A DNA stretch of 64,000 nucleotides from Basidiobolus meristosporus CBS 931.73 (Eukaryota > Fungi > Basidiobolomycota). The position numbers were made by a program, and so were the translations under genes. The stretch spans positions 62,001 to 126,000 of the forward strand of contig MCFE01000174.1 in the NCBI GenBank assembly GCA_002104905.1, in the 5' to 3' direction. A model generated the notes under the pieces. It was not told the origin of the DNA. It ran no database searches and saw nothing but the letters and a program-made list of their open reading frames with translations. This document shows positions 33,835 through 57,866 of the stretch, one piece after another (positions within the stretch are counted from its first letter, which is position 1; each line of letters starts with the position of its first letter).

Positions 33835-36800
33835 CATGCCATACACACACCCTCCGAGAAGTACTCTATGTACCCAAAATAGCAAAGAACCTACCATCAG
33901 TAGGCAAGGCCACTGTAGAAGGACTCAGTTTTTGCTTTGTCAATACTTGATGCATGATTACTGATCAAAATGGGGCCTATATTGTGTTGGGTATCAGAGA
34001 TCAGAATCTATACAAGTGACTTATGTTCCATCATATCTAGAAGCCAATATAAGTCACTTAACAGAAGAAACACCAATGCTTTGGCACAGGAGATTTGGAC
34101 ACAACAATTTTGATTAGTTGTGCAAAATAATCAAAGATCAGCTAATTTCCAGAGTAAGAATTGATCACCTAGCTGATTTAGAGCACTATGAAGCCTGCTT
34201 ATATAAGAAAACAGCCAGAGTATTGTCCAAGATCTCTGGGCTAATTAAAGCTAAGAAATAATCAGATCTAACTCACTGAGATATGTGTGGACTTATGCAT
34301 AATTTGCCCTTAGGTGGGATGAAGTATCTATCACTTTTGTTGATGATTATACAAGATACGCATAGGTTTACATCATGGAAAGAAAGGAAAGAGCTTTGTT
34401 CAAGATCAGGGAGCTCAAAGCCATGGTGGAGAGAGAAACTGGTGAAAAAATCAAGAAAATATGCTCTGACAATGTTGGAGAATACACCTCAAAGCACTTG
34501 ACCCACTTCTGCAATATTCATAGGATAAAGCAGGAGACTTTTGTACCATACTCTACACAGCAAAATGAAGTGGCACAACATGCCAACAAATCAATAATTG
34601 GTATCACAAGATTTATGATCCAAAATAAAAAGTTATCCTATGATAAAAAAAGTGTAAAATGCATAGTGTTGAGCTACTGCAATGAGAGTAAAGCATTCAG
34701 ATTCTACAATACAAAAGCAAAGAAGCTGATCCAGTCCAGTGATGTGTTGTTTGATGAAGATTCAAATTCTCACAGAAAATGACATCAGATGATGACAAAA
34801 ACTTAATCTCAAGTCCACCAATAGTTGGGATTGAATTGGAACAGAACAATGAAAAAATTTTCACTCTCAAGAACTCCTCAATCATGGTTCAGGCCAAATC
34901 AGTGCTAAGGAATATCCCAGAGGTGATCATGTCAGTATCAAATACCAGGAGATCCAACTGGGCACAAAATAGCCCAAATCACTCTATCAGTGAAGGTACA
35001 AACTTAGCCTATGCATATTCAGCTCATATTGATGAGCTCCACACTGTAAAAGTGGCCCTAAATAGCCCTCAGACAAGGTTTTGGAGATCCTTAAAGACTA
35101 AGGAATATCAGTCTCTGATGGAAAATCAAACTTGGGACTTGGTCATATAACTAATCAGCCAAAACCAATTGGATGCAGAGAGGTCTTTAATGTTGTAAAA
35201 ATTTGTATTTCCACCTAAATATTCACCTAACTTAGTCACTTAGATCATTACCTTCAAATCCTAGAGAATACTGACCAAATTCCTTTTGGGATTTACTTAG
35301 AATATTTTCACCAAAATGCCAGGTACCTAGAACATGAAAATTCTCAAAGTTGTCCAAACAGCCACAAACTTTGCACACATGTTCTTGGGACCTTCCTTAA
35401 CCTATTCTACGTGTTTGCAATGCCAAGATCAGGTAAAAGTATAAATACTACTTTTACATTCAATAAATCATTAAGTGAAAACCACATAATCTACTTGTTC
35501 TCCCAATCACTTCCAATATCTCCAAGACTCTTACAACAGGTTATGAGCCCCAAGCTGTCACTCTCTGCAATGTCTACTACTGCTATTACTGGAATTTTTC
35601 TCTCTGCTGAAAAGTTGGATGGATCTAACTACCAAGTGTGGAAGGTGAAGATGAAGATGCTGCTACAAGAAAGAGGCCTTTGGGATATTGTCATGGGAGA
35701 AGAATGCCCTCCTAAAAGTGTGGGAGAGGAAGCCTTAAAGTACCAGAAGAAAGAACAAAGTGCCTTTAACTGCATTTGCCTTAATGTTAAGGATAAATTG
35801 CTAATTCAATGCTCAAGTGCAAAAACGGCAAAGAATGCCTGGAAAGCATTAGAAGACACCTACCAGTCATGTTCAGTTGCTAAGAAGATGTATCTGAGAC
35901 AAAAACTCTTTACTACAAAGATGCTGCCAGGAGAAGAAATGAAAAATCTAATTAACAAAATTACCCTGCTGGTAGATAAGATTGAATCTGTGGGCGTACC
36001 AACTACTGATGAGGATGTGATAGTTACCATCCTGAATAGCCTGACAGACAAGTTTCAGGGCCTTGTATCAGCCCAAGAGTCCAGAACTGAAGACTTGACC
36101 TTAAATTACATATATAGAAGGCTCCTGGATGAAGAATTAAGGAAATCAAGCGCCAATAAGAAGGAAGAAGAAAATGCTTTAATAAGCAATGATAGCCAAC
36201 AAAGGAGATACCCAAGACCCTACAAAGGCAACAGCAACCTATTCTGCAACTACTGCAAAAGGAAAGGACACACATCAGACCGGTGTCTCAAAAAGAGAGA
36301 TTATCAGCAAAAGAAGCCTGAATATGGAAATGCTGCAACAACTGAAGATAGACTATTCATATCTGCACTAAATATGACCACAAACAAGGATTCTCAGACG
36401 TGGTATATTGACTCTGGAGCTTCTCAACACTTTACACACCAAAAAGAACTTTTTACCCAATATCAAGAAATTCTAATTAAGAAGGTTTTGATGGGTGACA
36501 ATAAAGCACTTGATGCAGTGGGAGAAGGAAATATCCGAGTAAACCTTAGAAGCAGTGAAGGAAGCCATACACTGACCTTTAAAGAAGTACTCTATGTACC
36601 AGAAATAGCCAAGAACCTACTCTCTGTAAGCAAGGCCACAGCAGAAAGACTCAGTTTCAGTTTTAACAATTCTGGATGCAGGATCACTGATCAGAATGGT
36701 GCCCATATTGCTTTGGGCATCAGAGATCATAATCTATACAAGTTGACTTATATTCCATCATATCTGGAAGCCAATATAAGTAACCTATTTACCTCAAAAC

Positions 36801-39800
36801 TCTTCATCCACTTCTGCAAAATTCATGGGATAAAGCAAGAGACTACTGCACCATACTCCCCACAGCAAAATGTAGTAGCAGAATGAGCTAACAGACCAAT
36901 AATTGATATGGCAAGATCTATGATCCATGATCAAAAATTATCCTATGATTTTTGGGCGGAATCAGTTGCCAATGCTGTATATCTTAAAAATAGGAGTTAT
37001 AACAGAATACTTTGAGATTCTACTCCATTTAAAGCATGGTATGGATACAGACCAAGTACAGAACATCTAAGAATATTTGGGTGTACAGCATATGCCAAAA
37101 AACAGGCCGGAAATCAGTCAAAATTTGAGCCAAAAAGTTTAAAATGCATATTTTTGGGCTACTGCAATGAGAGTAAGGCATACAGACTCTACAATACTAA
37201 AGCAAAGAAGCTTATCAAGTCCAGGGATGTGTTGTTGGATGAAAATTCAAAATTTTCACAAAAAAAGACATCAGACAATTACAAAAATTTGATCTCAAGT
37301 CCACCAATTGTCAGGATTGAATCAGAGCAAAACAATGAAGATTTTCTCACTCCAGAGGACTCTACAACTGTGGTTCAGCCAGAATTAGTGCCCAGGAATA
37401 TCCCAGAAGTGATCATTCCAGTATCAAATACCCAGAGATCCAATCGGACAAGAAATAGCCAAAATTACTACATCAATGAGGGTACAAACTTAGCCTATGC
37501 CTATTCAGTCCATATTGATGAACCCCAGACTGTAAAAGAGGCCCTAAATAGCCCTCAGACAAAGTTTTGGAGATCTGCAATGACTGAGGAATATCAGGCC
37601 CTGATGGAAAATCAAACTTGGGACTTAGTCAAATTACCAATCAACCAAAAATCAATTGGATGCAGATTGGTCTTCAAGACAAAATACAAGGCTGATGGTA
37701 CAGTTGAAAGATACAAGGCAAGACTTGTAGCCAAAGGATACTCTCAAACAAAAGGACTTGACTATACTGAGACCTTTGCACCGGTAGCCAAGTTTAATTC
37801 CATCAGTTTAATATTGGCTAATGCAGCCAAATATAAGTTTTTTATTCATCAAATGGATGTAAAAACTGCATCTTTGAATGGAGAACTTGATGAGGACGTG
37901 TATATGGACCAGCCTGATGGTTTGTTGACCAAGATAACCCCCATTTGGTCTGCAAGCTTAAAAAGTCACTATATGGTCTCAAACAATCACCAAGAGCCTG
38001 GAATTGCAAGATAGATTCTTATTTGGAATCTTTGAGTTTCAAGAGAAGTAATGCTGACTATAGTATATACTATAAGCCAGATAGAGCAAATCAAGTTCTA
38101 TTAGCTCTACATGTGGATGATCTTATTATAGCCGCCAATAACCTAGAAACATTGGAAGAGACTAAATCCAGCCTATGTAAGGAGTTCAAGATGTCTGATT
38201 TAGGAGAACTTAGTTACTACTTAGGGATTAAGTTCTCCATAAACAGAAGTACCCAGACTATTACCCTAAGCCAATCCAAGTATATTCAAGATATACTAAA
38301 GAAGTACAAAATGGAAGACTCTAAACCGGTAGCTACCCCAATGGAGACAAACCTTAACTTGGTCAAAACTCAACCAAATCAAGAGAGCTTGGTGCCATCT
38401 GAAAGCCCTGACATTCCTTATCAATCTATGGTCGGCAGTCTGATGTATATCATGCTTGAAACATGTCCAGATATCTCATATTCAGTGGGAGTTGTCAGCC
38501 AACATAATCAGAACTATGGATCTGATCATATTGCAGCAGTTAAGCGGATTTTTAGATACCTAAAAGGAACTGCTGATATCTGCTTAAGATACACTTATAA
38601 GGACTCAGAACAAGATCTTGTGGGACACTCTGATGCAGATTGGGGACAAAACTTAGAAGACAGAAGATCCACCACAGGATACACCTTTCTTTACTGTAAA
38701 GGAGCAATTTCATGGAATTCAAGAAAGCAACCAGCTGTAGCACTTTCCACCACAGAGGCAGAGTATATGGCAGCCTGTGAAGTTACAAAAGAAGCAATGT
38801 GATTAAGAAAGCTGTTTACAGATTTAGGCCTATGTCAAAAACGCCTATTACTTTATTTCAAGATAATCAAGGATGTATCAATTAGGTAGAAATCCAACTT
38901 TTCCTGCTAGAACCAAGCACATAGATATTAGACATCATTTCATACGTGAAGCTATAGAGAATAACTTAGTTAGCTTAGCTTACTGTCCTACAGATGAAAT
39001 GATTGCAGACATACTTACCAAACCATTAGCTAGAGACAAGTTTGAATATCTTAGGTCAAAATTAGGACTAGTCAGTATGAACATTTGGCTGAGTGGGAGT
39101 GCTGTAAAAATTTGTATTTCCCCCTAAATATTCACCTAACTTAGTCACTTAGATCATTACCTTCAAATCCTAGAGAATACTGACCAAATTCCTTGTCAGG
39201 ATTTACTTAGAATATTTTCACCAAAATACCAGGTACCTAGAACATGAAAATTCTCAAAGTTGCCCAAACAGCCCCAAACTCTGCACACATGTTCTTGGGA
39301 CCTTCCTTAACCTATTCTACGTGTTTGCAATGCTAAGATCAGGTAAAAGTATAAATACTACTTTTACATTCAATAAATCATTAAGTGACAACCACATAAT
39401 CTTCTTGTTCTCCCAATCACTTCCAATATCTCCAAGACTCTTACAACATTTAAGACAAAACACAAGGCCAGTGGTACAACTGAAAGATCAAAGCAAGACC
39501 AGTGGCCAAAGGATACTCTCCAGCAAAAGGACTTGACTGTACTGAGACCTCTGCACTGGTAGCCAAGTTCGATTCCATTAGATTCATATTGGCTTTTGCA
39601 GCCCATTATATGTTTTTTATATATCAAATGGATGTAAAAGCTGCATTTGTGAGTAGAGAATGGTATGATGATGTGTATATGGACCAGCCTGATGGGTTTG
39701 CAGTCAAAGATAACACACATTTGGTCTGCAAGCTTGAAAAGTCTCAATGTGAACTCAAACAATTGGCAGGAGCATGGGATTGCAAGATAGATTCTTATTT

Positions 39801-40900: not shown

Positions 40901-42537
40901 ATTAAATGAAGACCCACTATAGCAAGCACTATATACAAAAAAGTGATACCACCTAAACATATATGTGTGACACTTATTCCCATATCTTAAGTGCAAGTGG
41001 GGTCATTTACTTTCATTTAGCAACTCATTGTATGTAGAAGTTGTATCTGTTCTCTTTTCTTGGCAAAGCAAACATCCATCATATGCCTAAAAAGCTCACA
41101 CCAGTATATGTGTAGACTTGGGCTTTTGGACTTCATTGAGAGTTTGCATGTCCTGGGTACCAAAATTTTGGTCAGCTATTCTAAGCAAGCCCCATCAAAG
41201 AATAGGGGCAAGATATTCTGATATTTACAATTTTGATCTAAGCAAATAAGTAAGTGAAATATTTAGGTATAAATATGCAATGTGCCACCAAAGAAAATCT
41301 TTATGTAAGAGGTGGAATAACTGGTACAACAAAGCATACCATATATTCTCACAATACTCTTAACAGTATCTTCTCCCAAAAGTAGTCACAGTCAAAAGAC
41401 TCATTACACAGGTAAGCAAAAGCAATAAATGCCTTACACATTGTTTCATACATCCTCCATACAAGCTCATCAATTGACCTATCATGAATAGAGACACTTT
41501 GTTAGAAATCTGAATATATGTAGTCAATGCCAGTCCATTATATGGGATTTGGAGTATATGAAGTGCATTGTTGACAGCAGTATGCAACAGGTACTCTGCA
41601 AAATCCTAGTTGAGGTCCTAGGAGTCCTATGTGAAGAGCTCAGCAATAGATCTTAGCATTAATCACCAATGTGGGTGATTTACAATGAAAAACTTTGGAT
41701 ACAGAGTGGACTGGATCCAATGGGACGTGGATAGCTGAAAACTGGTTCAATCTTTACTGGACTTCTGGAGAATTCAGAAGATTTGTGGCTCCAGGTTATT
41801 TTCAAATTGATATAGCTTGAAAAAGGGACATAAGTGATTAAGGACACACCAATCACTTTTTACTGTTTTGATCATCCATTCACTATTCTCCACAAACAGT
41901 GGTTGCAACGTTCAAGGCCTTGCCAATGGGGGAATATCTTGATGGTAATACAATTCCCAAGGCCGGCATTAGATGTCAGGAAATCAACCACAATGTCATA
42001 TACATGACTGATCCACGGTAATCTTTGATTTTCACAACGTTTCTTGCTTCCGTTGCTTTGCAGTGGATGATAGGTGTGCGAGAATGCTTAGGATGAGGGG
42101 ATATGGAAACTGACAATACAAGGCTCATCATAGCCCATTTTGCCACTACCACCTTACCATTCTATGGGAACCGAGCCCTTTCCTATAATACTCTAGAACG
42201 CACCAGCTTTTACTTCCCTCCCCAAAGGGCACCTGCGGTCCCCACTTTGCGGTTTTTCATGTCACTTCTGTGAACAACGTCCACTAGGCAGTGAATGCTT
42301 TTGCTGAAAGTCACCACCCACTGATTATCATGATTGAGTGAATCATTGACGTGGTACAACGGCGCCTACTTTATCTGGATTGTTCGTGTTTCATCCTACC
42401 ATCTATCCGAGCCTTAGCTCCCTGTAATTGGACCCGATCACCGAGAACCATGTCACCTGGTGTAGAGATCATCTCTTCCAGTCACGTGATCAGGGGTTTC
42501 CACTAAAAGATGTCATATTAGAGGATCACTCCGAACC

Positions 42538-42866
42538 ATGGAACCTGGCAAGCAACAGCAACTGTTGCTTTTTCTCAAGCTGCTAAACGAGCGATACAAC
42601 CAAACCCGACGATGGAAGACGACTTTTGAGCAGAAATTCAACCACCTACTGTTCTCCCAAGAGGATCACCTGCTTCAAACGCGACTGGTGAGCGCACTCC
42701 TCTCCCTGGAGCTGATAACCACTGAGATGGAGGAGCCGGACATTGAACATGTAGGAGTGAATCCAACCACCTCCCTTCAGATGTACCACCCCCACTAACC
42801 CGTTGTACTTTTCAGTCTCCAGCCACCGAGCGGCAGCGAAAAGCGCCGCTTACCGGGCTCACCTAG
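42538..42866 (+). CDS. Small hypothetical protein, probably two exons
   Basis: ATG ORF MEPGKQQQLLLFLKLLNERY...; downstream CTAAC branch point and TTTTCAG acceptor at 42815; CpG-normal context. Confidence 0.35.
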
Positions 42867-44086
42867 CGAAGTTCTCACCCTCCCCTCCTCATCCCTTCCC
42901 AGGACTTTAGCGCGTTGCACCGTGCCCACGTGAGCGGTGGAAATACATCCCACTCAGCATACCCACCCTCACAAGCTCGAACGAGAATTCTCCTTGGAAT
43001 AAAATGGATGCACTCGAGACATAGCGCATGAGAATGAACCTGAACATGAACACGATTCCCTCATCGACTGATAATCATGCCTAGAGATATCTATCACGAC
43101 GCCGCTTGTGGACGTAGGTAGGAGGTTATGGTCGTATTTAGCAGTCTTTGGTATCGGTATCGCCCAATGGTGGCTAGGAATCATAATCGATCTGATGCCA
43201 TCTACCATTTGGATTCATCTTGTTACCAATCCAAGGGTCACACTAGATCTTCTCTGGGTTGGGGATCCATTTACTGGCCAACATGCGCAGACACAGGTGG
43301 AGAGGATCTGGATGTGTAATGGTGGTAGTGTCAGTAGACGGTGTTGGCGGTAGTAGTGTCGGTGGTAGTGGCAGAGGTGGCGTCAGTGGAATCTAGTGAG
43401 ATTCGCTAATGTTAACAGCCGCGCTAAACATTCGATTGGATTGTGGTGTTGACAAGTGGCTTGCGGGCATGAGCGACAGGGGGCGAGGCTCATATGCATC
43501 TCATGTCCAAAACAGTGGACCACCCGGTGAGAGCCGATGAAACAGCCGAATAGTGGCTCCAGAATGGAGTCAGCAGAAGTAGGGAAGGCACCGGGAGTGG
43601 CTTTCTTTGACACAGATTTTATTATGGCTTCATGTACGATGGACTACTTTGGCCGCTTCCGATGTTTAGGGGACAGATCTAACAAAAGACACGAAGATCT
43701 GTTGCAATCCAACGTGTTTCGGTACAGCTGGCCAATGATCGAGGGGATGGATCTTCTGCATTAGCATCGTCCACCTCGAGATGGATTGTTGAATATTGGT
43801 CTGGTTGCGCTGGTTCATATTACAGCAGTGGCTTTGGTGCGGGTTGGCTGCAGATGTGTTTCTTGCCGAATACCTCACTCCATCCCTCGACCAATCATAC
43901 CCACCTCAAGTCAGCCCAAGATGGCCGTTTAGAAATGAGAATGCACCGCTTGCAAGCTCGCCGAGGGGAAGATGGTTTGATTTTCAAGGGAAATTCCCCT
44001 GCATCGGTTCCATCAGGAACATTTCTGACCTTCAATACCGTCAAAGGAGTCAATTAAACCAAACCAACCGGTGTTTCGAGCGAAGT

Positions 44087-44094
44087 TATAAAAG
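44087..44094 (+). promoter_or_regulatory. TATA box of the Gly-rich protein gene
   Basis: TATAAAAG 86 bp upstream of ATG 44173. Confidence 0.6.
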
Positions 44095-44172: not shown

Positions 44173-47100
44173 ATGAAAATCTCCGCCCCAAAGCTTTTGT
44201 TCATTCTTTCCGGAATTTCCGCCATCAGTGGTGCTGCTCTGCAACGCCGTCACAATGGTGAAATTCACGAAGTAACAAAGCCCGCATACGATATCAATGA
44301 TATCCTGGGTAACGGAGGAGGCGAAGGTCCGGGATCGAATTCTGGCAGCAACGGCGATTATGGCAAAGCAGGCAACGGTGCCGGCAAAGGTGACGAAGAA
44401 GAATGTGCAAACGGTCACGGAGAAACTGGGGGTAATGGAGGAGGTGCAGGTCCAGGTCCAGGATATGGTGCAGGACCTGGGGCCGGTGGAAACGGCGGCG
44501 GGTCAGGGCCTGGTGGTAATGGAGGTGGTGAAGGACCTGGATATGGCGCCGGCCCCGGAGCTAGCGGAAATGGCGGTGGTGCAGGTCCAGGATATGGTGC
44601 AAGCCCAGGAAATGGAGGAGGCGTAGCACCTGAAGGTGGAGCTGGTGGAAGCGGCGGGCCAACAACTTATGACACTGGAAATGGCGCTGGATCAGGCCCA
44701 GGTGGTAACGGTGGTGGAGCTGGTGGCAACGGAGGTGGCGAAGGTCCAGGATACGGTGCCGGTGGAAATGGTGGTGGTACTGGACCAACATCATATGATA
44801 CAGGAAGTGGTGCCGGATCTGGACCAGGAGGAAATGGTGGTGGTGGTGAAGGACCAGGATATGGCTCTGGCTCTGGGGCCGGTGGAAACGGAGGCGGTTC
44901 TGGTCCAGGATATGGGGCCGGACCTGGAAATGGTGGCGGCATAGCTCCTGGAGGCGGAGCTGGCTCAAGTGGTGGACCAACTTCATATGATACCGGAAGC
45001 GGTGCTGGCTCTGGACCGGGGGGTAATGGAGGCGGTGAAGGTCCAGGATATGGCTCTGGCCACGGGGATAGTGGAAATGGTGGAGGTTCCGGACCAGGTT
45101 ACGGTGCTGGCCCCGGAAATGGTGGTGGTGGTGGACCTACCTCATATGATACCGGAAGTGGTGCTGGTTCAGGACCTGGCGGCAATGGAGGCGGTGAAGG
45201 GCCAGGATATGGCGCTGGCCCCGGAACTGGCGGAAACGGCGGTGGTGAAGGGCCCGGTGGCAATGGAGGAGGTTCCGGACCAGGTTACGGTGCTGGCCCC
45301 GGAAATGGCGGTGGTGCTGCACCTGGTGGTGGAGCTGGTGGGAGTGGTGGACCTACTTCATATGATACCGGAAGTGGTGCTGGTTCAGGACCTGGCGGTA
45401 ATGGAGGCGGTGAAGGGCCAGGATATGGCGCTGGCCCCGGGACTGGTGGAAACGGTGGTGGTGAAGGGCCCGGTGGCAATGGAGGAGGTTCTGGACCAGG
45501 TTACGGTGCTGGCCCCGGAAATGGCGGTGGTGCTGCACCTGGAGGCGGAGTCGGCAGCAGCGGTGGACCAACTTCATATGATACCGGAAGCGATTCTGGA
45601 TCAGGGCCAGGTATTAGCGGCGGTGAGGGACCAGGTGCTGGTGGCAATGGAGGAGGCTCCGGACCAGGTTACGGTGCTGGCCCCGGAAATGGTGGTGGTG
45701 TAGCACCTGGTGGTGGAAGTGGTGGACCTACTTCATATGATACTGGCAATGGTGCCGGATCAGTACCAAGTGGTAATGGTGGTGGTTCTGGACCAGGATA
45801 TGGCTCTGGACCCGGGAATGGTGGTGGAGAGGCACCTGGTAGTGGTGCTGGAGGAAGTGGTGGACCAACTTCGTATGATACTGGCAATGGTGCCGGATCT
45901 GGACCGGGATATGGCGCTGGCCCTGGGGCTAGTGGAAACGGCGGAGGATCTGGACCGGGATATGGCGCTGGCCCTGGAGCTAGTGGAAACGGCGGAGGAT
46001 CTGGACCGGGATATGGCGCTGGCCCTGGAGCTAGTGGAAACGGCGGAGGATCTGGCCCAGGTGGTAATGGTGGCGGTTCTGGACCAGGATATAGCGCTGG
46101 ACCCGGAAATGGCGGTGGAGCTGGCGGAAGTGGTGGACCTACTTCGTATGATACCGGTAATGGTGCCGGATCAGGACCAGGTGGTAATGGCAGTGGTGAA
46201 GGGCCAGGATATGGCGCTGGCCCTGAGGCTGGTGGAAACGGTGGAGGATCCGGACCTGCTGAGAATGGAAGTGGTGAAGGACCAGGATACGGCGCTGGCC
46301 CCGGAAATGGTGGTGGTGTCGCGCCCGGTGGAAGTGGTGGGCCAACAAGCTATGATACTGGAAGCGGAGCTGGATCAGGACCAGGTGGTAATGGCGGTGG
46401 TGAAGCTCCTGGATATGGAGCTGGCCCTGGAGTTGGTGGAAACGGCGGAGGATCCGGACCTGGAGGGAACGGAGGTGGTGAAGGACCTGGATATGGTGCT
46501 GGACCCGGAGCTGGTGGAAATGGTGAAGGTGTAGCACCTGGAGGTGGGGCTGGTGGAAGCGGTGGGCCAACAAGCTATGATACTGGAAGCGGAGCTGGAT
46601 CAGGACCAGGTGGTAATGGCGGTGGTGAAGCTCCTGGATATGGAGCTGGCCCTGGAGTTGGTGGAAACGGCGGAGGATCCGGACCTGGAGGGAACGGAGG
46701 TGGTGAAGGACCTGGATATGGCGCTGGACCCGGAGCTGGTGGAAATGGTGAAGGTGTAGCACCTGGAGGTGGGGCTGGTGGAAGCGGTGGGCCAACAAGC
46801 TATGATACTGGAAGCGGAGCTGGATCAGGACCAGGTGGTAACAGCGGTGGTGAAGGTCCTGGATATGGAGCTGGTCCTGGAGTTGGTGGGAATGGAGGTG
46901 GCGAAGGACCTGGATATGGCGCTGGACCCGGAGCTGGTGGAAATGGTGGAGGTGTAGCACCTGGAGGTTGGGCTGGTGGAAACGGTGGGCCAGCAACTTA
47001 CAACACTGGAAGTGGCTCTGGGACAGGACCTAGTGGTAACGGTGGTGGTGAGGGACCAGGATACGGAGCCGGTCCTGGGGCTGGTGGAAATGGCGGAGGT

Positions 47101-47277
47101 GAAGGACCCGGTTATGGCGCTGGTCCAGGAGCTGGTGGAAACGGAGGCGGTGAAGCACCAGGATACGGGACTGGTCCAGGAGCCGGAGTTGGGGGTAACG
47201 GAGGCGGAGTAGGACCCGGAGCTGGAGCTGGAGGAGGCTTCTACGATACCTCCAACGTGTTTGATATCGACTTCTAG
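44173..47277 (+). CDS. Secreted 1034-aa glycine-rich repetitive structural protein (resilin/flagelliform-silk-like composition)
   Basis: Single uninterrupted ORF; hydrophobic signal peptide, then QRR; GGNGGG(E/S)GPGYGAGPG repeats with 12 GPT(S/T)YDT spacers; variation concentrated at third codon positions. Confidence 0.93.
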   Translation: MKISAPKLLFILSGISAISGAALQRRHNGEIHEVTKPAYDINDILGNGGGEGPGSNSGSNGDYGKAGNGAGKGDEEECANGHGETGGNGGGAGPGPGYGAGPGAGGNGGGSGPGGNGGGEGPGYGAGPGASGNGGGAGPGYGASPGNGGGVAPEGGAGGSGGPTTYDTGNGAGSGPGGNGGGAGGNGGGEGPGYGAGGNGGGTGPTSYDTGSGAGSGPGGNGGGGEGPGYGSGSGAGGNGGGSGPGYGAGPGNGGGIAPGGGAGSSGGPTSYDTGSGAGSGPGGNGGGEGPGYGSGHGDSGNGGGSGPGYGAGPGNGGGGGPTSYDTGSGAGSGPGGNGGGEGPGYGAGPGTGGNGGGEGPGGNGGGSGPGYGAGPGNGGGAAPGGGAGGSGGPTSYDTGSGAGSGPGGNGGGEGPGYGAGPGTGGNGGGEGPGGNGGGSGPGYGAGPGNGGGAAPGGGVGSSGGPTSYDTGSDSGSGPGISGGEGPGAGGNGGGSGPGYGAGPGNGGGVAPGGGSGGPTSYDTGNGAGSVPSGNGGGSGPGYGSGPGNGGGEAPGSGAGGSGGPTSYDTGNGAGSGPGYGAGPGASGNGGGSGPGYGAGPGASGNGGGSGPGYGAGPGASGNGGGSGPGGNGGGSGPGYSAGPGNGGGAGGSGGPTSYDTGNGAGSGPGGNGSGEGPGYGAGPEAGGNGGGSGPAENGSGEGPGYGAGPGNGGGVAPGGSGGPTSYDTGSGAGSGPGGNGGGEAPGYGAGPGVGGNGGGSGPGGNGGGEGPGYGAGPGAGGNGEGVAPGGGAGGSGGPTSYDTGSGAGSGPGGNGGGEAPGYGAGPGVGGNGGGSGPGGNGGGEGPGYGAGPGAGGNGEGVAPGGGAGGSGGPTSYDTGSGAGSGPGGNSGGEGPGYGAGPGVGGNGGGEGPGYGAGPGAGGNGGGVAPGGWAGGNGGPATYNTGSGSGTGPSGNGGGEGPGYGAGPGAGGNGGGEGPGYGAGPGAGGNGGGEAPGYGTGPGAGVGGNGGGVGPGAGAGGGFYDTSNVFDIDF

Positions 47278-47803
47278 ACTTACGTTACCCATTCCTCTCC
47301 CCCCTCCTCCTGAATTATTCAGTGCTTACCTATATTCCATACTTATCCAAATTCCAACATTTCGAGATATCATAGATAGAAATAAATTACTTCTCAGCGT
47401 CTATCCCTGCATCAGTTTGAGCTCAGCCTATTACCCCTGTTGGTTGACTGGCCCTGCCAGGTGTGGCTCGTCCTTTCAAGAGTATTTCCGGAAACGCCAA
47501 GCTGGGTTAGGTTATGGAGGATTTTATCATGGGTTGTTTACTTTTGGGTTAGATTGTTGGGTGTGGACAAGGTTAAAGGAATTGTGATAGGTGAGACAGT
47601 AGGAATTAAGGGCGGCCGGATGACGTCATGATTCAGGTGGGGAAGGGGGTGGATTACAACAATTAAATTCAGTTGATATTACAATGTGACTAGTGATTCC
47701 AAAATGAAGTATGTTACAGGATTTCCAATTGATATGTACAAATTAATATGGATATTTTTGTGTATGTACCAGGTGCATGAAGATAGTGATAGGGTTTCAA
47801 GCA

Positions 47804-48815
47804 TTAGTAGCACGGCGGTGTCTCCATGGATTGCTCGTAGCATGGCAAGGAGCGTACGGCCTCCAACGCTTCCGCGTCAACAAACTGGAGCGATGTTCGG
47901 ATTACGATCCGCTTTCGAATGGTGTCACCTTTGACGAGCAGGATGCTTATGTTCAGTTCGTGATGGACGGACACATAATCGTTATCCCTATCGGAGAGCA
48001 CCTTCTCGGTGTCTTTGTTGGCGGGCAGTACGATCGGCTGGATCCACATCTTGCCGCATGATTTGGTGTTCCACTTGCTGGAGGTTTCCCGGATCTTGGT
48101 TCTCTTCGTTTTGGGCTTCCCATTCTGGGTGGGGGATCTGGCTACTTCGTAGATGGTCGCTTTGATCTCGCTCGCTTTCAGGTCGGTCTTGAAGGAATCA
48201 ACGCCGATTTGAATGGGAATCTCGTTGTCTGGACTGTATACCACAGAGGGGGAAAAGATACAGAAGGCCAATTCTGATTCGAGCTCACCAAATCTTAGAA
48301 GGGATTGGGACTCTTCAATCTCTGTGGTCGGCAGGGTTAGCCGTAGAACCTTGACCTCCCTGGTGTCTTTGAGGTTCTTGGCGAGTCCGTTCCGCTTGGC
48401 CACTGCGGAGATTTTGTATCTGACGCTTGCTAGGGAGGAGCCCGTTGTTTCGGGAAGGTCCCCAGGGAATGGAATTTCAAAGTGGTAGATGTAATGACCG
48501 GGGGAGAAATCTTTGGCCACTTCAATGGTTCGTAAAAACTCCACCTCCTTGTGGTAGAAAATATCGTGGTTCGGCTTGAGATCTAAGGTAAGGATTAGTG
48601 CGCTGGAAGCAGAGGATCAAGTGGCCATCAAGTTGCTTACGTTGGTTGGATGCTACGCCCTTGAACACAACTGTGATTGAGGAGATCTTGGTTCGGCACT
48701 GGATATCGAGATGGACGGAGCCTCTCAGCATCTGTCCAGGCGCGGAATCGTTGGCACCGTGGAGTACGATGCTGTCGCTTTGGAGTTGAAGACTGATTGA
48801 GTTGTTGTACCACAT
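47804..48815 (-). CDS. Alpha-arrestin (ART-type ubiquitin-ligase adaptor), 2 exons
   Basis: LRGSVHL..KISSITVVFKG, YHFEIPFPGDLPET, VRYKISA; C-terminal LPCY/PPCY PY motifs; intron 48583-48640 (GTAAGC...TAG). Confidence 0.85.
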
Positions 48816-49360
48816 ACTTGACTTTGGAAATGCTGCTTGTGCAGGTCGATGGCCCACTCTTTTATAACCGATGGCTCTGTCAAACACAATGTGGAGAATA
48901 GAGGAACTGGTCTCAATTTATAGGTTTAATTTGGCTTGGAACATCCCGAAATTGAAACCCTATGCTTACAATTCAATTTCCACCCTCCAGCACTTGGCAA
49001 ATCGATGCCGGCCGAACTTATTGGCAGACGACCACCCAATCCATCATAGCTTACCCGCTACCTGTGATTCGCATAAACTATCCATCACTCCACTCACACC
49101 CGCTCCAAGCCCAACTAACATCGCATTAGGCTCAATAAGGCCCATCAACCAATCGCCGGGCTAGCTGTGCGATGAGACCTACTGCAGAAACATATGAAAT
49201 AACAGGCTGGTCAATGACACAGAGAGTTGCAAATGATACCCGTCTGGATCGTCTGCATGGTTATCATAATGGATTAGCACATATCTGGGTGTTGATCGAT
49301 GAATGCCTAGAGGTTCTATATTTATTATATCATAATGGTACATCTAATGACGGCCTGCAA

Positions 49361-50832
49361 TCACTCTAGGTCACTTGCTTCACTCTGTTCCTCATCGGAC
49401 ATCTCGCTCTCCTCCACAGCATCAGAGTCGTCCTCCGATGTCTCTGACTCTTGGTCGTCGTCAAGAAAGGAGAAGTCCATCTTTTCGGTTGTCTAGATGA
49501 GAGGTGAGAAAGGTCAGCAGACTGGTGTATTGGTGATCGCCAGCTCCACCAACCTGGCTCGCAGAGCTGCTCGGCGTCTGCGTGTTTCTGCGGCTGGCCC
49601 GTGTTCGTCGTCCGAATTTTTCCTCCTCCTCGATAATGTTCTCTTTACTTAAACCTAAAAATAGATGAACCCTGTGGCTATTGGTTCGTCGGAGTAAAAT
49701 GATGAACTTACTCTCTCGCTCAGCCCGTAACTCACGTGCCGCCTGGATTTTCTTGCATTTCTCGATGGTCGGACGTCCTGGAGGAATGTTAGACCGGTAC
49801 GTGTCCATGGCCAGCTGGGCCAAGAGTACGCCGATGCCTTACTTACCGGACATGCCCAGCTCCGCAAGAATCTCCTTCAGCTTCTTGATTTGTTGTTTAG
49901 GCTGGTCCTCAATACCCTTAAATTCTCTGAACCTACACCATGGCATCCCTTAGCAGTCTACTTCCCAATGATAGTGTGAAGAAACAACCGCAAATACCAC
50001 ATCTTTCTGACGCCGCATTTCCCAATGTACATTTTTAGATTCTTGATCGTTTCTTGATCTTTTTCCTACACGAAGTCAGAAAATTCGTGAGCCCCCGTTA
50101 CATAGACGCTGCGTGTAGTTGCGCTGGATTCCTACCGATATGGAGGTGGTACTATTTTGTGTTGTTGCGGGCTTCTTATTGGTCTTGGATGGCTTCTTGG
50201 ATGGCTTCGTGGGGGAGAAATCCTCCACTTCGCTGGTTCCAGACTCCTGTGTGTCCTCGTGCACCTCTGGGCTGTTTTGAGACTCGGTTAGTTTATCAGG
50301 AGAGGAGCTGTGAGGATCTTCCTTTTGCTCCGCCGCCGTCTCTTCAGGTTCCAGGGTAGCCACAGGGTCGTTCTCCTCGTCGCTGTCTTCGATTATAGCC
50401 CCGCGTTTCTTGACTCGCTTGGGGACCACCTCAGGTTCAGAGGGTTGTGCTTTACGTTTCGGTAGGTTGGTGTCCGGCACGGAGGAATCTGCGGTCTGGA
50501 GAACCTCTGACTACATTCATGATGTCAGAAAACAATAGAAGTGTCGAACAAAGTGAAGCAACCAAACACCAACTGTGATGCGTTCCGAGATCTCCCGGAT
50601 GTATTTTCGCCATTCCGAAGTTTCCAGGGCATCCTCTTCTAGCTCAAGATTGACTTGCAACTTGTTACGAATTATACGAGGAGTAAGTACGCTGAGGTTT
50701 CGAGCAGGGTCGGCTCGTTAGTGAAACACGCTATGACCAACCAAAAGAATCATCCCGTACAAACCTTAGATCTCCGCCTCGGATAATTTTCTCACACTCT
50801 ATGTTCAACTTTTCTTTTAAGTCTGAATTCAT
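49361..50832 (-). CDS. HIRIP3-like histone chaperone (DEK-C-like N-terminus, CHZ-like C-terminal domain), multi-exon
   Basis: Spliced: DLSVLTPRIIRNKL; acidic/basic linker; IKNLKMYIGKCGVRKMW...LKEILAELGMSGRPTIEKCKKIQAARE; acidic tail. Confidence 0.75.
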
Positions 50833-51445
50833 ATTCCCGAGATGCACGAGCTGGCTCAAGTCAAAACGTGTAGGTAGACTTGGATAACTAACGCTTTATT
50901 TTCCTGTCAATGGAATCAGGCTTGGGATCCAATCAGATCTCAGCTATTTGTGATAAATAATCAACAACCCACCCATTTCAGAGCTGAATTCCAGTACGTA
51001 CTGTGGACGGTCGGCACCCAAATGCCCAATGTTATTGGATTTGGATTGCTCTTAATTGCTGGAATGTCCCGAGTTGTCCCGTAAACAACCATCTTATCGT
51101 GACTGTCCATGGCAATTAATCCACAGCAACTATAATTATTGGCATCATATATATAGGATCATTGGATGCGAAAATCGGGCCATCTCAGTCACTGTTGTGT
51201 GAATTGGACGGACCAATAACAGGCCGCCTATGGTGTTTATGCTTCAACTAGAGGGAGAAAACAAACAATTGGGACTGACAGGTCGAAATCACTATTTATG
51301 TGGAGGGGGGTTCGTTGGAGGATTACATCGTTCCTCGGAGTGTCATCTTTTGAAAGCGCCACCATTTCCTTTTGGCATATCTGACTTGGCCGTAGACCAC
51401 CCCGCTATCTTGGCAACCCTTTCATTGGTTTCTTCCTGCTACAGA

Positions 51446-54141
51446 ATGTCCACGTCCCCTGCTGCAGTTGCACAGCTCAAGTCCTTGGTTTGGTATCACT
51501 TGGACCAAGACCTGATAGAGAATGCCACCTTTTTTGCCGAGCGTCTGTACGCGTACACAGCTCTAGACGAGGAATCACAATATCTTCTGGCCAAGTGTTT
51601 AGTTCGATGCAAGAGATACAGCAGGGCGTATCATATTTTGCGCAACCCAACCACCTATTTCGCTCGATTTCTGCTCGCCAAATGCTGTATACATCTAGGC
51701 CAGTTGGAGGAGGCTGAGAAGCTGCTACTCTCTCTTTTGGAGGACAAGAGCATTCATTACGAGAAGATAAATATAGGTAGGGTTGACTATGCTTGTGACA
51801 CCTGTGTCGGTTGACGTTGCTTGACTGACCGGTTGGTTGCTTTTTCAGGCTGGGTTGGCCCCCACGAGCGGTTCCATCGCCCAGATAGAAGTGCAGTGCA
51901 TTTTCATCTTGGTTCGGTGTACAGGTAGGCGGATCCAACGTTTCTGCGTCATGTGATGGTGCTAACGAGTCCGTACGGAAAACATTAGAAAAACAGAGCG
52001 TCTGGTAGAGGCGACGAAGCATTTCTCTACCTGCCTAGAGCTCAATCCATTCCAGTGGGCCGCTTTCGAGGCGCTTTCTTCTTCCAGCAAGGGTATGTTG
52101 AAAATTTGGTCACTGCAACTTACGGACAGCCTAATAACATGCAACCCAGGGAGTGGTATCGATATCAACTTCATTTTCGATCCGAACAAAGCCCATCAGA
52201 TTATTAAACGCTTTGCTAACACTGCACCCACCCACAACCATGACCTCAGCCTGGCCAAGTCAGTTCCTGCGATAGCCACAACCGTCCAACCTAGAGCCTC
52301 GCTCCTGACTGGCCAGGAAAATGAAGAGAAGGTATGATCTCTCCCGGCTCGTATACTGCATTGGATCCAAGTAACGTTTTGTGTCCAGACAGTTAGACTT
52401 GCCTATTGCTGCTCTCCGATGTTAGAAAAGAACCATGTAGCCAGACTAGAAATCGAGAGAATAGATTCACCATTCCTTTCGTATCCACTATCATCACCCA
52501 CTAGATTGAGACAGGCCCTTAAGCTAATCAAGCACAAGAACAGCATCAGCATCACGAGAACATACACAGTAAGCTCTTTGGTATGCGTTGTCAATCTCCA
52601 GTACTCATCTAGATGCTCCTATAGGAAAACAGCCCAACCACCGCCACACAACGAGCAAAGCGAGCTCGATTTGAGAGCACGAAGTGGTCGAATAAGGCTG
52701 AAGTAGAGAAAAGAATCAAAATCGAGATGGTATGCAATCCGAGCCACTCCTTCGTCCTATACGCTTTATTAATGACCGCCCTTAGATCACTCCATCGCGG
52801 GATGATGGAATCACAAGAACCGAGTCCAGCAAGTCATGCCTGGAGGAGCTTGCTCAAAGAAAAGGCACCGCCACCATCATCGAGCTATTACGCAAAATCG
52901 GGCAATCGGTCGTGTATCTACAGGCCTACAACTGCCCCAAAGCCCTGGAAACTTTTGCATTACTCCCCACCTCGCAGTTTAACACGGGGTGGGTACTCGC
53001 CCGCGTCGGAAGAGCCTATTTCGAACTGGCCAAGTACAAAGAGGTGAGCAAGCGTCCTTTAACCCCTCAGTATCCTCACCCCGACTAAGCTTGTTTCCTG
53101 TTAGGCCAAAGAAAAATTCGAGCAAATGAGACAACTTGAGCCTCATCGCTTGGATGGTCTTGAGATCTACTCGACCACTTTGTGGCATTTGAAAGAGGCG
53201 GTGGCCCTTAGCCACGTTAGTCGCGAGTTGACGGCGATGGACAAGGATTCTCCACAGGCCTGGCTGGCTTCCGGCAATTGCTATAGTCTAGAACAAGATC
53301 ATAAATCGGCAATTCGAAGCTTCAAGCGGGCTATTCAACTGGATCCCAACATGGCCTATGGCCATACATTGTGCGGGCACGAGTACATTGCAGTAGAGGA
53401 TTACGATAATGCCATGGTTCACTTCAGGAGCGCCCTTCGCTTAGATCCGAACCATTACAACGCCTGGTAAGTGATGCCCCGGAATAACCACCCTCGGTCC
53501 CGGATTCACTCATCATTGCGGTTAGGTATGGCATGGGCATCATCGCCTTGAAAACAGACAACCTTCCCACGGCCAAATACTACTTCTCCAAAGCGGTGGG
53601 CATCAACCCGACGAATCACGTTCTGCTCTGTTGCGTTGGCACGGTAGGTTCACCCACGTCACGATTCAAGTGGATGGCACTCGGATTAACCTATAACCAA
53701 ACCCCTAGGTCTTGGAGAAATCTGGGAAAATGGCCGAGGCACTCCGATGGTATCAGGCTGCGCAGAAGCATAGCCCGGAAAGTCCAATCCCGAAACTGAA
53801 GACAGCGAAGGTGTTGATGACACTTGAAAGATACGAGGTAACTGAATTCCTGCTTGACATGACCACTGGGCTGGATCAGAGTCTGACCAAATTCGTAGGA
53901 AGCGCTTCCTCTGTTCCAGCATCTGAAGGAGATATATCCTCAGGAGGCGGGAATCCGTTTTCTTATGGGCCAGGCCCTCAAGAAGCTAGGTAACACCACT
54001 GACGCATTGATGGAGCTTACCAAGGCGCTCGACATGGATTGTAAGAATACCAATATCATAAGGAGCGCTATTGAAATGCTCCCGTCTAGGGAGATTGGTG
54101 TAGGCGATAGGTGCGAGGATGGAATGGTCAAGGTGTATTAG
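51446..54141 (+). CDS. CDC27: Anaphase-promoting complex subunit 3 (TPR protein), multi-exon
   Basis: ENATFFAERLYA N-terminus; LEPHRLDGLEIYSTTLWHL...SPQAWLASGNCYSLEQDHKSAIRSFKRAIQLDPNMAYGHTLCGHEY...HYNAW. Confidence 0.96.
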
Positions 54142-54989
54142 CTTGTAGATTGGTGCGAGGATTTTGGTTCAAGTGTAGTGTTTTTTGGCTTCTCATCTCA
54201 TTTCGGTTGGGATATGTATATAATCTTGTCATTTACTCCATTTTGGTTGCACTGGCCCTGCTTTCGTCCCCTGCGCATGTCCACTTTCCCATTCTGTGTA
54301 TATTGTCTTCTGGATTCCATTCACTTGTGCCGTATGTGCCATGAATCTAAACCAGACTGTAGATTGCTATAATAAACAGCGATGACATGAGAGCGCGGAC
54401 TTCCAGTGTTGACCTGGCCTTCATCACGTGACAAACAAGGTACCCCTCACGCCCGGATTTCCTCTTATGGGCCCGCCTGATTTTCCAGCCTAGGGGAATT
54501 GGGACTTTTCCAACCTCGATCGGCGTACCGTACCGCATAATTGGATATAAATCTAGCCTTGACGAATATGGGAAACCTTTTTCAGCTGAGCCAACAATAT
54601 TCCCCGGCAAGGTTCAATATAGCAAAGTGTCAGCTTATGACACCCCGAGGAGGTTTGTGATACGTGACGTCGATGGCGTATCCAAATTCATCTATTGATA
54701 GCAGGAACACGAGGGAACAGGAACAAATCGTCGATTGATTCAATGGGTAGCTTTAGATACCGGGGGGATTCAATGGCGAGCCAACGGTTGCATAGGCGCT
54801 AGTCTTCTTGAGAACTGTCTAAAAGTACAACGGAGAGTGTTCATTGATGCGCATTACCTCGGTATAGGCCCAAGGATTAACATCTACCAAGTATAATGGA
54901 TGGAATAAGTGGATTTCCACCACATAACTACATCGGCGCAGCCTTTAATTGTTCCCTAGCCAGAATAGGCATCTGGAATTCATCACCAA

Positions 54990-55783
54990 CTATGACATTC
55001 CGGTCGAGTAAATCATTTGCAGTGAATCGATCAACAGAGCTTCGTGCATTAATATAACTAACCGTAAACTCGCTGTGATCAGCCACCGTTTCAACGGGTT
55101 ATCAAGAAGGTTCTGGTCGTCATCTGCTGTGAAGGTGCAGCTATAGTGGGCTGCTACGACGTTGCATTGTCGCCCGGGTACCTGTGGTTGGGCCCAAATC
55201 CTAAACGAGCTTAACCTGATGGTTTCGCGCCGCACAGCCTCTTGCGATAAGCTTAAGCTACATCTCCATGGCGGAGATCATGGTTTTGCCTGGCCAATCA
55301 GGCACATTTTCCTTGACAGCAACCTCGACCACATACTCTGAAGGACTGTGAACTGTCTTTTCGGGATGATTGATACATATTCCAATGAGGATATATGAGA
55401 TGCAAGTGCTGCCATGTGAACTGCCTTGAGTCACCGAGCCCAGCATAGAGCACCATGGGTGCACGCTGCCCGGTCCCCGAGGATTGCGATACTCTATGGT
55501 GGGACCCCATAGGTTGCAAGTGTCTATGCCAAAATGAATCCTGCAACTACATAAACAACAGTACACCTATTGACCTGAATGGCAACAGCCAAACAGATAC
55601 AAAGGACAACATTCCCGCGAATCCAAAGGATAGTGCCAATACCTCTTCCGGTATTTCTGCCTCTTTGCGGGTCTCATTAATCCCTCTACTTGGCCTACTA
55701 AACGGCCATTGGTAAGCCACCATTGTAGAATTTGGGACACGCTCGTATAGCCTCGATGCGTATTCCTTGACCACTACCTTCAT
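54990..55783. CDS. Unresolved hypothetical gene (strand ambiguous)
   Basis: Minus strand has ATG 55783 and T-rich GT..AG intron-like tracts; plus strand has a Cys-rich ORF 55455-55715 with a hydrophobic tail. Confidence 0.35.
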
Positions 55784-56045
55784 GATTAGTACCTTATGGT
55801 CATTCAGTCAATAAATATCGAGATTCGAAAACGAGTTCAATGGGTGATTTAGTACTTTCCCAATAGTGGATCATCATTCGGCGCTGATGACTTAATTAAT
55901 CAGTTTAAATTGATGAATAGTTGGGCAAAGTTATCATACACACGTGAGGGTGGACCAGCTATTGACTTGCCAAATAAATCAGACCAAGCAAGCTTCAACA
56001 CCTCGAAGCATTCCACTGCAACACACACCAAAACCACTGTTCACC

Positions 56046-57866
56046 ATGTCGGAGGAAGACCTAAAAGAATGGAGGGCCTCTCGTCAGACCTTTTCAGAGA
56101 ACATCCGGGAGAAAATTCGGAAGCGTAATTTAATCGGTTCGTCGCAAGCAGCCGACGAGGAGGAGACGGAGTCGCCGTGGAAACTGGAACGGACCAGTAC
56201 ACATCAGAGTGGCAACCTACCTGAATACAGCATACGACCGAAATCTACCTTGAAAAATCTGAAATACATCACAAGCTCTATTGAATCCGGAGATCTGGTA
56301 ACCCTTCGCTTACTTTGTCACCTAACCTATAGATCCATCTCTACACACACACTTTACAAGTAAGAAGTTGACCCGGGTTTCATAGGAAGACCGAATGGCC
56401 AACGTCTACAACGATTATGCACAGCATTTCATTGATACTAGCAAACGACCCCAAAACTTTGTTCGTGACGCGGGCCTGTCGCAGCGCTTCGATGAGTCAG
56501 TTGAGTGTATGGGAAGTTCAATTGCAACATGCCGCTCAAACAACCGTCGTTTAATCTAGATACCCCAAGCTCAAAGAACTGGCCAAGCTGAAAAACCAAC
56601 TGGTCGCAGAGCGGGCGACCCCGCCTATGTATCTACAGGCGGACTTGAGAACTTACGACCTACGTCTTTTGGACACGAAATTCGATGTGATCCTGATCGA
56701 CCCGCCGCTCGAAGAGTAAGTCCGGATTTTTCTGCCACCGCGCCACGCCCCGCGCACGCTGACCTTTTCAAAGATATTGCCGTCGGTCCCCTATGATTGC
56801 TGGCACGAACCGAGACTTCTGGACATACGAAGAACTAATATCCTTTCTGCGAAGTTCTGCTTGTCCCGTCAATGGGCCACATTTGTTCACCGTATGCCTT
56901 AACACACATCTAAGCGAGCCTCCGCATTGAAGAGATCGCCGCCAACCCATCGTTCATCTTCATATGGTCGGGGAGTGCCGAGGGGCTTGACCTCGGTAGA
57001 AGGCTGCTCTCCAAGTGGGGCTATCGTAGATGCGAAGATATCGTTTGGACCAAAACGAACCGAACCTGGGAGGTATGTGATTAAGCTACGCAGGCCTTCG
57101 ATCTGGATGGATGACTCAACTAGTCCCCAGGGAAGCCGCTTTGTCGAAGGGAAGTCCGTTTTTCAACACACGAAGGAGCATTGCTTAATGGGCATCAAGG
57201 GAACGGTGCGCAGAAGCACCGACGGGCATTTCATCCACTGCAATGTCGATACGGACATCATCATCTCCGAGGAGCCCTCTCATGGAAGTAAGTTGCGCTA
57301 AACAACGCTGCCTCATCTCTCCCGAGTTGATGTCCATTCAATGCTAGGTACGGCCAAACCCGAGGAGATCTATCACATTATAGAGCATTTCTGTTTGGGC
57401 AGACGTAGACTTGAGCTCTTTGGAGAGGTAATACATCAGCATAACGTGACATCGGATCGAATCTCACACCGGAATGCTTCCGTAGAACCACAACATCCGA
57501 CCTGGCTGGGTCACGGTGGGGCAACGCATCACTGGCTCCAACTACAACTCGACCAAGTTTAACTCCTACTTCGCCGGCACCAACGGGCACTTGCTTGGCG
57601 GCACTCCAGGTAATCTTCACGCTGGGCATGGCATAAGCTTGTATCTCACCGGAACCTTAACCATCCCTCGTCCAGAAATCGAGTCCCTTCGGCCACGCTC
57701 ACCGCCACCTCGAGATGGCTCCAACAAGTCAACCCCAAAGAAAAAGATGAATAACAACATGAATCCCCCCGGGAACCCGAAATACAACATCTCCCCATCA
57801 AACCACCCGGGCTTCAAGAACAGCCCTGGAGGGATGAATCGACCCTATGGTGGGTCCAGGTGGTAG
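56046..57866 (+). CDS. METTL14: m6A mRNA methyltransferase complex subunit, METTL14/KAR4 clade (MT-A70 family), multi-exon
   Basis: [111 protein letters not shown]. Confidence 0.95.

Follow-up and report, generated by a model that had tools for sequence, protein, structure and literature searches.

The DNA analysed here (hereafter the window) is a 64,000-nucleotide stretch of contig MCFE01000174.1 of the fungus Basidiobolus meristosporus CBS 931.73, and it contains a gene for a glycine-rich repeat protein of 1034 residues, located at 44173..47277 on the forward strand and followed by a convergently oriented gene for an arrestin-domain protein. This gene, its relatives and its possible function are the subject of the following account. 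All features lie on the forward strand unless indicated otherwise.

The gene and its coding frame

The listing of open reading frames (ORFs) in the window contains an uninterrupted frame from ATG to stop at 44173..47277. The coding sequence (CDS) is complete and consists of a single exon of 1034 codons plus the stop codon. The NCBI annotation of the contig (assembly GCA_002104905.1) includes a single-exon gene call whose product is identical to the 1034-residue protein, and the ORF together with this call confirms the protein reported at this position in the preliminary description. In 300 dinucleotide-preserving shuffles of the 3105 nucleotides, the longest open frame comprised 273 codons on average and 501 at most, compared with the 1034 observed. 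The other frames of the same DNA contain ORFs of 244-285 codons. ORFs in these frames, including those in antisense orientation, were rejected as by-products of the GGN-rich repeats. The guanine-plus-cytosine (GC) content within the gene amounts to 59%.

The coding frame has also left its mark on the divergence of the repeats. When 25 copies of the 17-residue repeat unit described below were anchored only on the motif GPGYG and compared, the mean pairwise difference per site was 0.14 at the first, 0.11 at the second and 0.51 at the third codon position; without the anchor codons the three values were 0.20, 0.16 and 0.51. Because the differences concentrate on third codon positions, the repeat copies differ mostly synonymously in the CDS frame. 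An excess of third-position differences was likewise found in comparison with the paralogue presented further below. By all indications, the 1034-codon ORF is a genuine and selectively maintained gene of Basidiobolus meristosporus.

Composition and N-terminus of the protein

Glycine makes up 49.3% of the whole protein, followed by proline (10.0%), alanine (8.5%), serine (8.3%), asparagine (6.2%), tyrosine (4.4%, 45 residues), threonine (3.4%), glutamate (3.2%) and aspartate (2.0%), such that Gly, Pro and Ala together account for about 68%. In the repeat core (residues 86-1019) the shares of Gly and Pro are 52.4% and 10.7%, and the preliminary description of a protein that is more than half Gly is thus correct for the core but not for the complete chain. 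Its view of the core as devoid of Lys, Arg and Cys was borne out: the five Lys, the two Arg and the sole Cys are all confined to residues 1-78, with neither Lys nor Arg beyond residue 72. The core residues it had listed (G, P, N, S, A, E and Y) are indeed present, while it had left out 32 Thr, 14 Asp and 13 Val as well as two Ile, one His and one Trp. The mature chain contains 54 acidic versus three basic residues and has a net charge of about -51.

At the N-terminus, two Lys precede a hydrophobic stretch (residues 8-18, nine-residue Kyte-Doolittle mean up to 2.4), which is followed by the small residues SGAA and by a dibasic RR at positions 25-26. Such an arrangement is typical of signal peptides and would make the protein one of the export type. 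Judging from the succession of n-, h- and c-regions and from hydropathy, the predicted signal peptide covers about residues 1-21 (44173..44235), 19 of which are identical in the paralogue. The RR (44245..44250), invariant in the paralogue, is a candidate Kex2-type processing site at which cleavage would be expected. Both the signal-peptide-like start and the dibasic site had been recognized previously. A short non-repeat segment follows (residues 27-46, 44251..44310) and is conserved as well. Further downstream, an EEEC motif (44395..44406) harbors the sole cysteine, Cys78, and residues E75 to C78 are invariant in the alignment with the paralogue.

Repeat architecture and C-terminus

The repeat core (44428..47229) is evident from parsing of the sequence, from the arrays reported by Tandem Repeats Finder (TRF), from a Gly period of 2 and from values of the predicted local distance difference test (pLDDT) below 50 throughout. 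It is organized in 13 super-repeats, each of which starts with a SYDTG-type anchor, continues with one to four copies of the 17-residue unit GNGGGxGPGYGAGPGxG (consensus GNGGGEGPGYGAGPGAG) and closes with NGGGxAPGGGAGGSGGPT. The anchor module (consensus GSGGPTSYDTGSGAGSGPGG, n = 13) carries [ST]Y[DN]TG after GGP[TA], and the super-repeats bounded by these modules are 42-91 residues long. While the GNGGGxGPGYGAGPG unit had been seen before, the second module with its GGPTSYDTGSGAGSGPG anchor had been overlooked. The motif GNGGG occurs 46 times, GPGYG 25 times, and YGAGPG and GGNGGGxGPG 21 times each; GPG was counted 70 times and GPGG 15 times. The 45 tyrosines follow one another at distances of 12-35 residues.

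At lags 2 and 4 the autocorrelation of Gly is positive, whereas lags 1, 3 and 5 give negative values. The chain is therefore a Gly-X alternation interrupted by Pro and not a collagen-like G-X-Y sequence; a collagen-like or polyglycine-II arrangement with period 3 was ruled out on the same grounds. At the nucleotide level, TRF detected nested arrays of 51 nucleotides in 3.2 copies (99% identity), 216 nucleotides in 2.2 copies (92%) and 225 nucleotides in 2.5 copies (98%). Such near-identical arrays indicate recent unequal exchange.

The C-terminal tail (47230..47274), which ends in FYDTSNVFDIDF, is short, polar and aromatic (..GGGFYDTSNVFDIDF) with the polar, acidic end ..SNVFDIDF, and the protein shares a YDT[ST] tail with the paralogue and the relative from Basidiobolus ranarum. 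A hydrophobic end of the type required for a glycosylphosphatidylinositol (GPI) anchor is not present, the maximum 19-residue hydropathy past residue 40 being 0.26. The possibility of a GPI-anchored wall protein was rejected because of the polar C-terminus.

Relatives, synteny and selection

A paralogue of 1369 residues is encoded on contig MCFE01000438.1 (locus L003, 11481-15587, minus strand), where it adjoins an arrestin paralogue in the same convergent orientation. It possesses the same signal peptide, RR, short N-terminal segment, EEEC motif, both repeat modules and a YDT-type tail. The N-terminal pattern conserved in both proteins consists of the signal peptide MKISAPKLLF.., the RR and HNGE..KPAYDI..DILG. 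Residues 1-46 are identical at 39 of 46 positions, with 0.11 nonsynonymous (dN) and about 1.5 synonymous (dS) substitutions per site and a dN/dS of 0.076. In the alignment of 975 codons, dN/dS comes to about 0.095 with a proportion of synonymous differences (pS) of 0.68, and in the core (876 codons) the two genes differ 121, 136 and 524 times at codon positions 1, 2 and 3. Neutrality is excluded, because both genes keep an open frame of over 1000 codons at saturated synonymous divergence. The paralogue differs from the 1034-residue protein in length and repeat number and in the consensus of its unit, which contains YGSGPG instead of YGAGPG. That each gene has its own unit consensus points to concerted evolution within each array.

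In B. ranarum, a Gly-rich ORF follows the arrestin homologue on contig JASJQH010006914.1 (locus L004, 12055-12498). Its units are those of the 1034-residue protein and its tail reads ..AYDTSNVYA; it breaks off within the repeat array, where the contig ends, and is a fragment of a syntenic orthologue. The public gene call of 173 residues at this site is accordingly a fragment and exemplifies how repeat genes break assemblies. When phmmer was run locally with scaling to large-library size, the paralogue was retrieved with E = 1e-181 and the 148-residue B. ranarum fragment with E = 2e-6. GNGGGxGPGYGxGPG units alternating with GGPTSYDTG anchors are common to all three proteins. Close to their C-termini, the paralogue and the B. 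ranarum fragment carry an additional Cys (EEC) that is missing from the 1034-residue protein. All three belong to a small, undescribed family so far documented only in Basidiobolus.

The synteny anchor is the convergent neighbor, the arrestin-domain protein K493DRAFT_301445 (317 residues; 47804..48815, minus strand). A search with the ORF of its one large exon retrieved the protein's own public entry in B. meristosporus CBS 931.73 at 100% identity, which identifies the organism, along with paralogues and B. ranarum homologues. The window is collinear with the paralogue locus and the B. ranarum locus between 47.8 and 60.4 kb. At a third B. meristosporus arrestin block (locus L005), no repeat-protein gene was found within 10 kb. 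The collinear block spans at least 12 kb; B. meristosporus has three paralogous copies of it and B. ranarum one or more (window 47800-60400; L003 1-11032; L004 1-11274; L005 5400-11039). It comprises the genes for the arrestin-domain protein, a 336-residue protein, Cdc23/ANAPC8-like and further TPR proteins and a chitin deacetylase, followed by MT-A70 or SPRY-RING. The repeat-protein gene has been kept in only two of the three B. meristosporus copies. The triplication is consistent with a large segmental or whole-genome duplication.

Flanking sequences and genomic surroundings

Conservation between the paralogous loci extends into non-coding DNA. A proximal promoter block at 43980..44022 has a counterpart at the matching position in front of the gene for the 1369-residue paralogue (L003, upstream of 15587), and the two align at nearly every base. 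The part common to both paralogues is about 45 nucleotides long, while their synonymous sites are saturated, and the block is a candidate for a shared transcription-factor site. Within it, the near-palindrome GGGAAATTCCCC is followed by TGCATC..TCCA.CAGGAACAT. A TATA box, TATAAAAG, is situated 86 nucleotides upstream of the ATG (44087..44094), and GAGTTATAAAAGC is kept in both paralogues. On the other side of the gene, alignment with the 3' flank of the paralogue revealed, at 47346..47386, the conserved blocks TCCAAATTCCAA and ATATCATAGATA in the 3' untranslated region (3'UTR), followed by an AATAAA-type signal (AATAAA). A single-copy block of 258 nucleotides (window 42483-42740), roughly 1.4 kb ahead of the gene, is 71% identical to L003 16595-16851 and occupies a matching position upstream of the paralogue, and an open forward frame (MEPGK.QQLLLFL..) is kept over about 57 residues. 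The block could represent a small gene or exon missing from the annotation, or else a regulatory element acting at a distance.

The first 42 kb or so of the window are AT-rich, with 36-44% GC per 2-kb window and mostly 37-41%. The gene-bearing part has 46-51% GC, and the repeat gene lies about 2 kb inside the compositional boundary. The AT-rich part (1-42000) contains at least two copies of Copia-type long terminal repeat (LTR) retroelements with gag/integrase and RVT_2 ORFs at 6068-8143, 8116-9984, 35411-36886 and 37154-38802, the first two of which overlap with a change of frame at about 8116-8143. The genes downstream of the repeat gene encode the arrestin-domain protein, the 336-residue protein, which has no Pfam match, and ANAPC3/Cdc23-like TPR proteins, and farther downstream homologues of chitin deacetylase and MT-A70. 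To judge from these products, none of the downstream neighbors would suggest a functional partnership with the repeat protein.

Database searches and structure prediction

AlphaFold2 in single-sequence mode yielded a mean pLDDT of 26.5; no residue reached 50, and neither helices nor strands were predicted. This is consistent with intrinsic disorder over the full length of the model, and it provides the disorder prediction that had been proposed as a check on the protein. Pfam returned no family for the whole protein, an NCBIfam search with all 1034 residues returned nothing, and a PDB sequence search gave no match at E values up to 1. A word-index protein search gave no hits, whether the query was the full protein or residues 1-90. 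When 1.84 billion representatives were searched exhaustively with HMMER, a sole match at E = 6e-4 and no true relative emerged; the match, a bacterial metagenome surface protein with CARDB/DUF6242, was dismissed as compositional noise. The 1034-residue protein and its paralogue are both absent from the 15-billion-protein collection, in which the arrestin neighbor is present. As the collection lacks both of these proteins, the blank library searches say little about relatives of this kind and imply no absence outside Basidiobolus. Very low-complexity proteins are perhaps systematically missing from this collection although public gene calls exist.

The ESM Atlas contains the sequence, with neither a model nor usable look-alikes. 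A search for a source of horizontal transfer among bacterial and archaeal genomes produced 600 pattern matches, none of which was confirmed, and none was confirmed either when N-terminal patterns were used to scan JGI metagenomes. This argues against a recent bacterial origin of the repeat gene. Literature searches on the repeat motifs and on Basidiobolus in combination with glycine-rich proteins returned nothing relevant. The preliminary description had recognized no named fungal family for the protein. The blank results from Pfam, NCBIfam and PDB agree with this, while repeat surface proteins of the Glomeromycotina do constitute a fungal precedent (PMC8786786).

Possible function and alternative explanations

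We consider it about as probable as not (roughly 0.5) that the 1034-residue protein is a component of an elastic or sticky extracellular material. What we infer with regard to secretion, cleavage at the RR, cross-linking, mechanical role and location can be put together as follows. The N-terminal signal peptide would direct the protein into the secretory pathway, and after probable trimming behind the conserved RR it would be released as a strongly acidic, disordered chain of about 1000 residues that has no GPI anchor. This chain could then act as a sticker-and-spacer polymer. Its Gly/Pro spacers with GPGxG-type turns would remain hydrated and unfolded, and stretching would for this reason be opposed entropically. 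The 45 tyrosines and the one cysteine of the EEEC motif would serve as sites for non-covalent association or for oxidative cross-links (dityrosine, disulfide), giving rise to an extracellular network. Most likely, the protein would serve in the matrix of a wall or surface structure, either bearing load or providing stickiness.

The biology of the organism offers several structures in which such a material could be placed. Basidiobolus belongs in or near the Entomophthoromycotina (PMC9391592), so that the earlier guess of an entomophthoralean organism was close, and it passes through insect and herptile guts (PMC9391592). The turgid subconidial vesicle ruptures circumscissilely and fires the conidium ('conidial rocket'), and the beak of the capilliconidium bears adhesive material (PMC13370150). 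Spore walls, the sticky tip of the capilliconidium and the vesicle on the conidiophore that launches the 'conidial rocket' would be candidate locations. The life cycle of the fungus relies on explosive discharge and sticky spores, and the protein would be a concrete molecular candidate for the material of these structures. Its repeats also offer a new and simple design for recombinant elastomers. A bolder version holds that the Basidiobolus proteins form a resilin-like elastomer family that evolved independently of animals, is cross-linked via tyrosine and resides in the wall of the discharge vesicle or in the capilliconidial glue. As a whole this version is speculative and decidedly unlikely. 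If true, it would for the first time connect a protein elastomer with ballistic spore discharge or with adhesion in fungi, and it would provide a new sequence template for biomaterials.

Several points weigh against an elastic or sticky material. No wall-anchoring or chitin-binding domain is recognizable by Pfam and no GPI-type end by hydropathy, and there is no gene for a peroxidase, laccase, tyrosinase or other oxidase among the nearby genes. Single-sequence AlphaFold2 gives low confidence for many proteins. The dN/dS values stem from a protein-guided alignment of low-complexity repeats and are biased downward. Finally, the assembled repeat number may be incorrect because repeat copies are 98-99% identical.

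In principle, the same features could also be explained in other ways. As a protective or masking coat, the protein would form an acidic, hydrated, Lys/Arg-free layer directed against trypsin-like gut proteases, desiccation and host immunity, similar to Mcl1. The core of about 950 residues without Lys or Arg offers no tryptic sites, the net charge is about -51, the organism transits insect and herptile guts (PMC9391592) and with Mcl1 a Gly-rich coat protein is already known from fungi (PMC9224550). However, neither a GPI anchor nor any other anchor is available for retention at the surface, the 45 tyrosines create many chymotrypsin and pepsin sites, and their regular spacing, which is kept across the paralogues, better fits a role in cross-linking or as stickers. 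We regard a coat as a possible, if rather unlikely, function. A beta-sheet or amyloid-type fiber resembling silk fibroin could be built on the alternating Gly-X pattern, and the autocorrelation peak at period 2 as well as an Asn content of 6% in the core would be in line with it, given that Gly/Asn-rich sequences have been linked to amyloid behavior (PMC8786786). Such a fiber is nevertheless very unlikely, since Pro (10.7%) occurs at intervals of a few residues (70 GPG) and disrupts beta strands, the Gly plus Pro content falls within the elastic zone, AlphaFold predicts no strands and the high net negative charge opposes packing.

It is also conceivable that the frame has little or no function and is open merely because expanding GGN-rich repeats seldom contain stop codons. 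ORFs of 244-285 codons do exist in other frames of the same DNA, and shuffled sequences reach 501 codons. Both paralogues, however, keep frames of more than 1000 codons together with signal peptide, RR and repeat modules at saturated synonymous divergence, an orthologue fragment is present in B. ranarum and blocks in promoter and 3'UTR are conserved, all of which render a non-functional frame highly improbable. The dibasic site after the signal peptide might further bring to mind a polyprotein precursor that is cleaved into many small bioactive peptides. As there is no Lys or Arg, and hence no dibasic site, past residue 72, only a short N-terminal propeptide could be released, and this explanation is nearly excluded.

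Comparison with known elastomers and repeat proteins

Elastomers and silk-like materials made of protein are known from animals and plants and include resilin, elastin, flagelliform silk, abductin and glutenin. The 1034-residue protein resembles insect pro-resilin, the exon I repeat of which is GGRPSDSYGAPGGGN, in its signal-type start, its Gly/Pro-rich and hydrophilic character and its predicted disorder. The resemblance extends to the regular spacing of tyrosine, to its sequence contexts (P-S/T-x-S-Y and Y-G-A-P/G) and to GGGN/GGNGGG runs. In resilin, tyrosines in the context ..PSDSYGAPGGGN form dityrosine cross-links (PMC6393770). Unlike pro-resilin, the Basidiobolus protein has no Rebers-Riddiford chitin-binding domain (Pfam blank) and no detectable homology to it; it is fungal, more Gly-rich, free of Arg in the repeats and composed of two alternating module types. 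Flagelliform silk consists to about 90% of GPGGX turn motifs (PMC6393770), and the protein shares with flagelliform and MaSp2 silks (GPGGX / GPGXX) the GPG-based pentapeptide-like turns, the very long tandem arrays and the concerted evolution of repeats. It differs from spidroins in that it has neither their N- and C-terminal domains (Pfam and PDB blank) nor poly-Ala or spacer blocks, and from spider silk in general in its strong acidity and its fungal lineage. The likeness to resilin and flagelliform silk that had been pointed out previously therefore holds for motifs and composition, while the defining domains of both families are absent, and it is best understood as convergent at the level of motif and composition.

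Among fungi, the AGL/IDP proteins of the Glomeromycotina invite comparison. These are small, mostly GPI-anchored surface proteins with Pro/Gly- or Gly/Asn-rich tandem repeats; they are predicted to be elastic and have been described as unique to the Glomeromycotina (PMC8786786). The Basidiobolus protein has in common with them the fungal origin, the signal for the endoplasmic reticulum (ER), tandem repeats, predicted disorder and a lineage-restricted occurrence. AGL/IDP proteins are likewise hard to assemble and annotate, and elastic or amyloid properties have been predicted for them. They are defined by an ER signal, at least 40% Pro, Gly and Ala and tandem repeats (PMC8786786), and the 1034-residue protein combines about 68% of these three residues with a signal-like N-terminus. 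AGL/IDP proteins have about 200 residues or less, are mostly GPI-anchored and often contain an intron after the signal peptide, whereas the Basidiobolus protein, compared here by description only, has 1034 residues, a single exon, no GPI-type end and regularly spaced tyrosines. A high content of Gly and Pro has been linked to elastic rather than amyloid behavior (Rauscher 2006, cited in PMC8786786). On the graph separating the two, one repeat protein of arbuscular mycorrhizal fungi (AMF) is placed at 62.5% Gly and 12.5% Pro (PMC8786786), and the core of the 1034-residue protein, with 52% Gly and 10.7% Pro, comes near the values of some AMF repeat proteins.

Mcl1 of Metarhizium and the Basidiobolus protein are both Gly-rich fungal repeat proteins with an export signal. 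Mcl1 is GPI-anchored, whereas the 1034-residue protein has no GPI signal. Mcl1, a secreted cell-surface protein (PMC9224550), has the collagen-like G-X-Y pattern with period 3, in contrast to the Gly period of 2 found here. On these comparisons, the Basidiobolus protein is to be placed outside the resilin, spidroin and collagen-like families. The only fungal precedents found come from arbuscular mycorrhizal fungi, whose small surface proteins rich in Pro and Gly are so far predicted to be elastic (PMC8786786). What is new in Basidiobolus is a family of very long, export-type, tyrosine-studded Gly/Pro repeat proteins under purifying selection.

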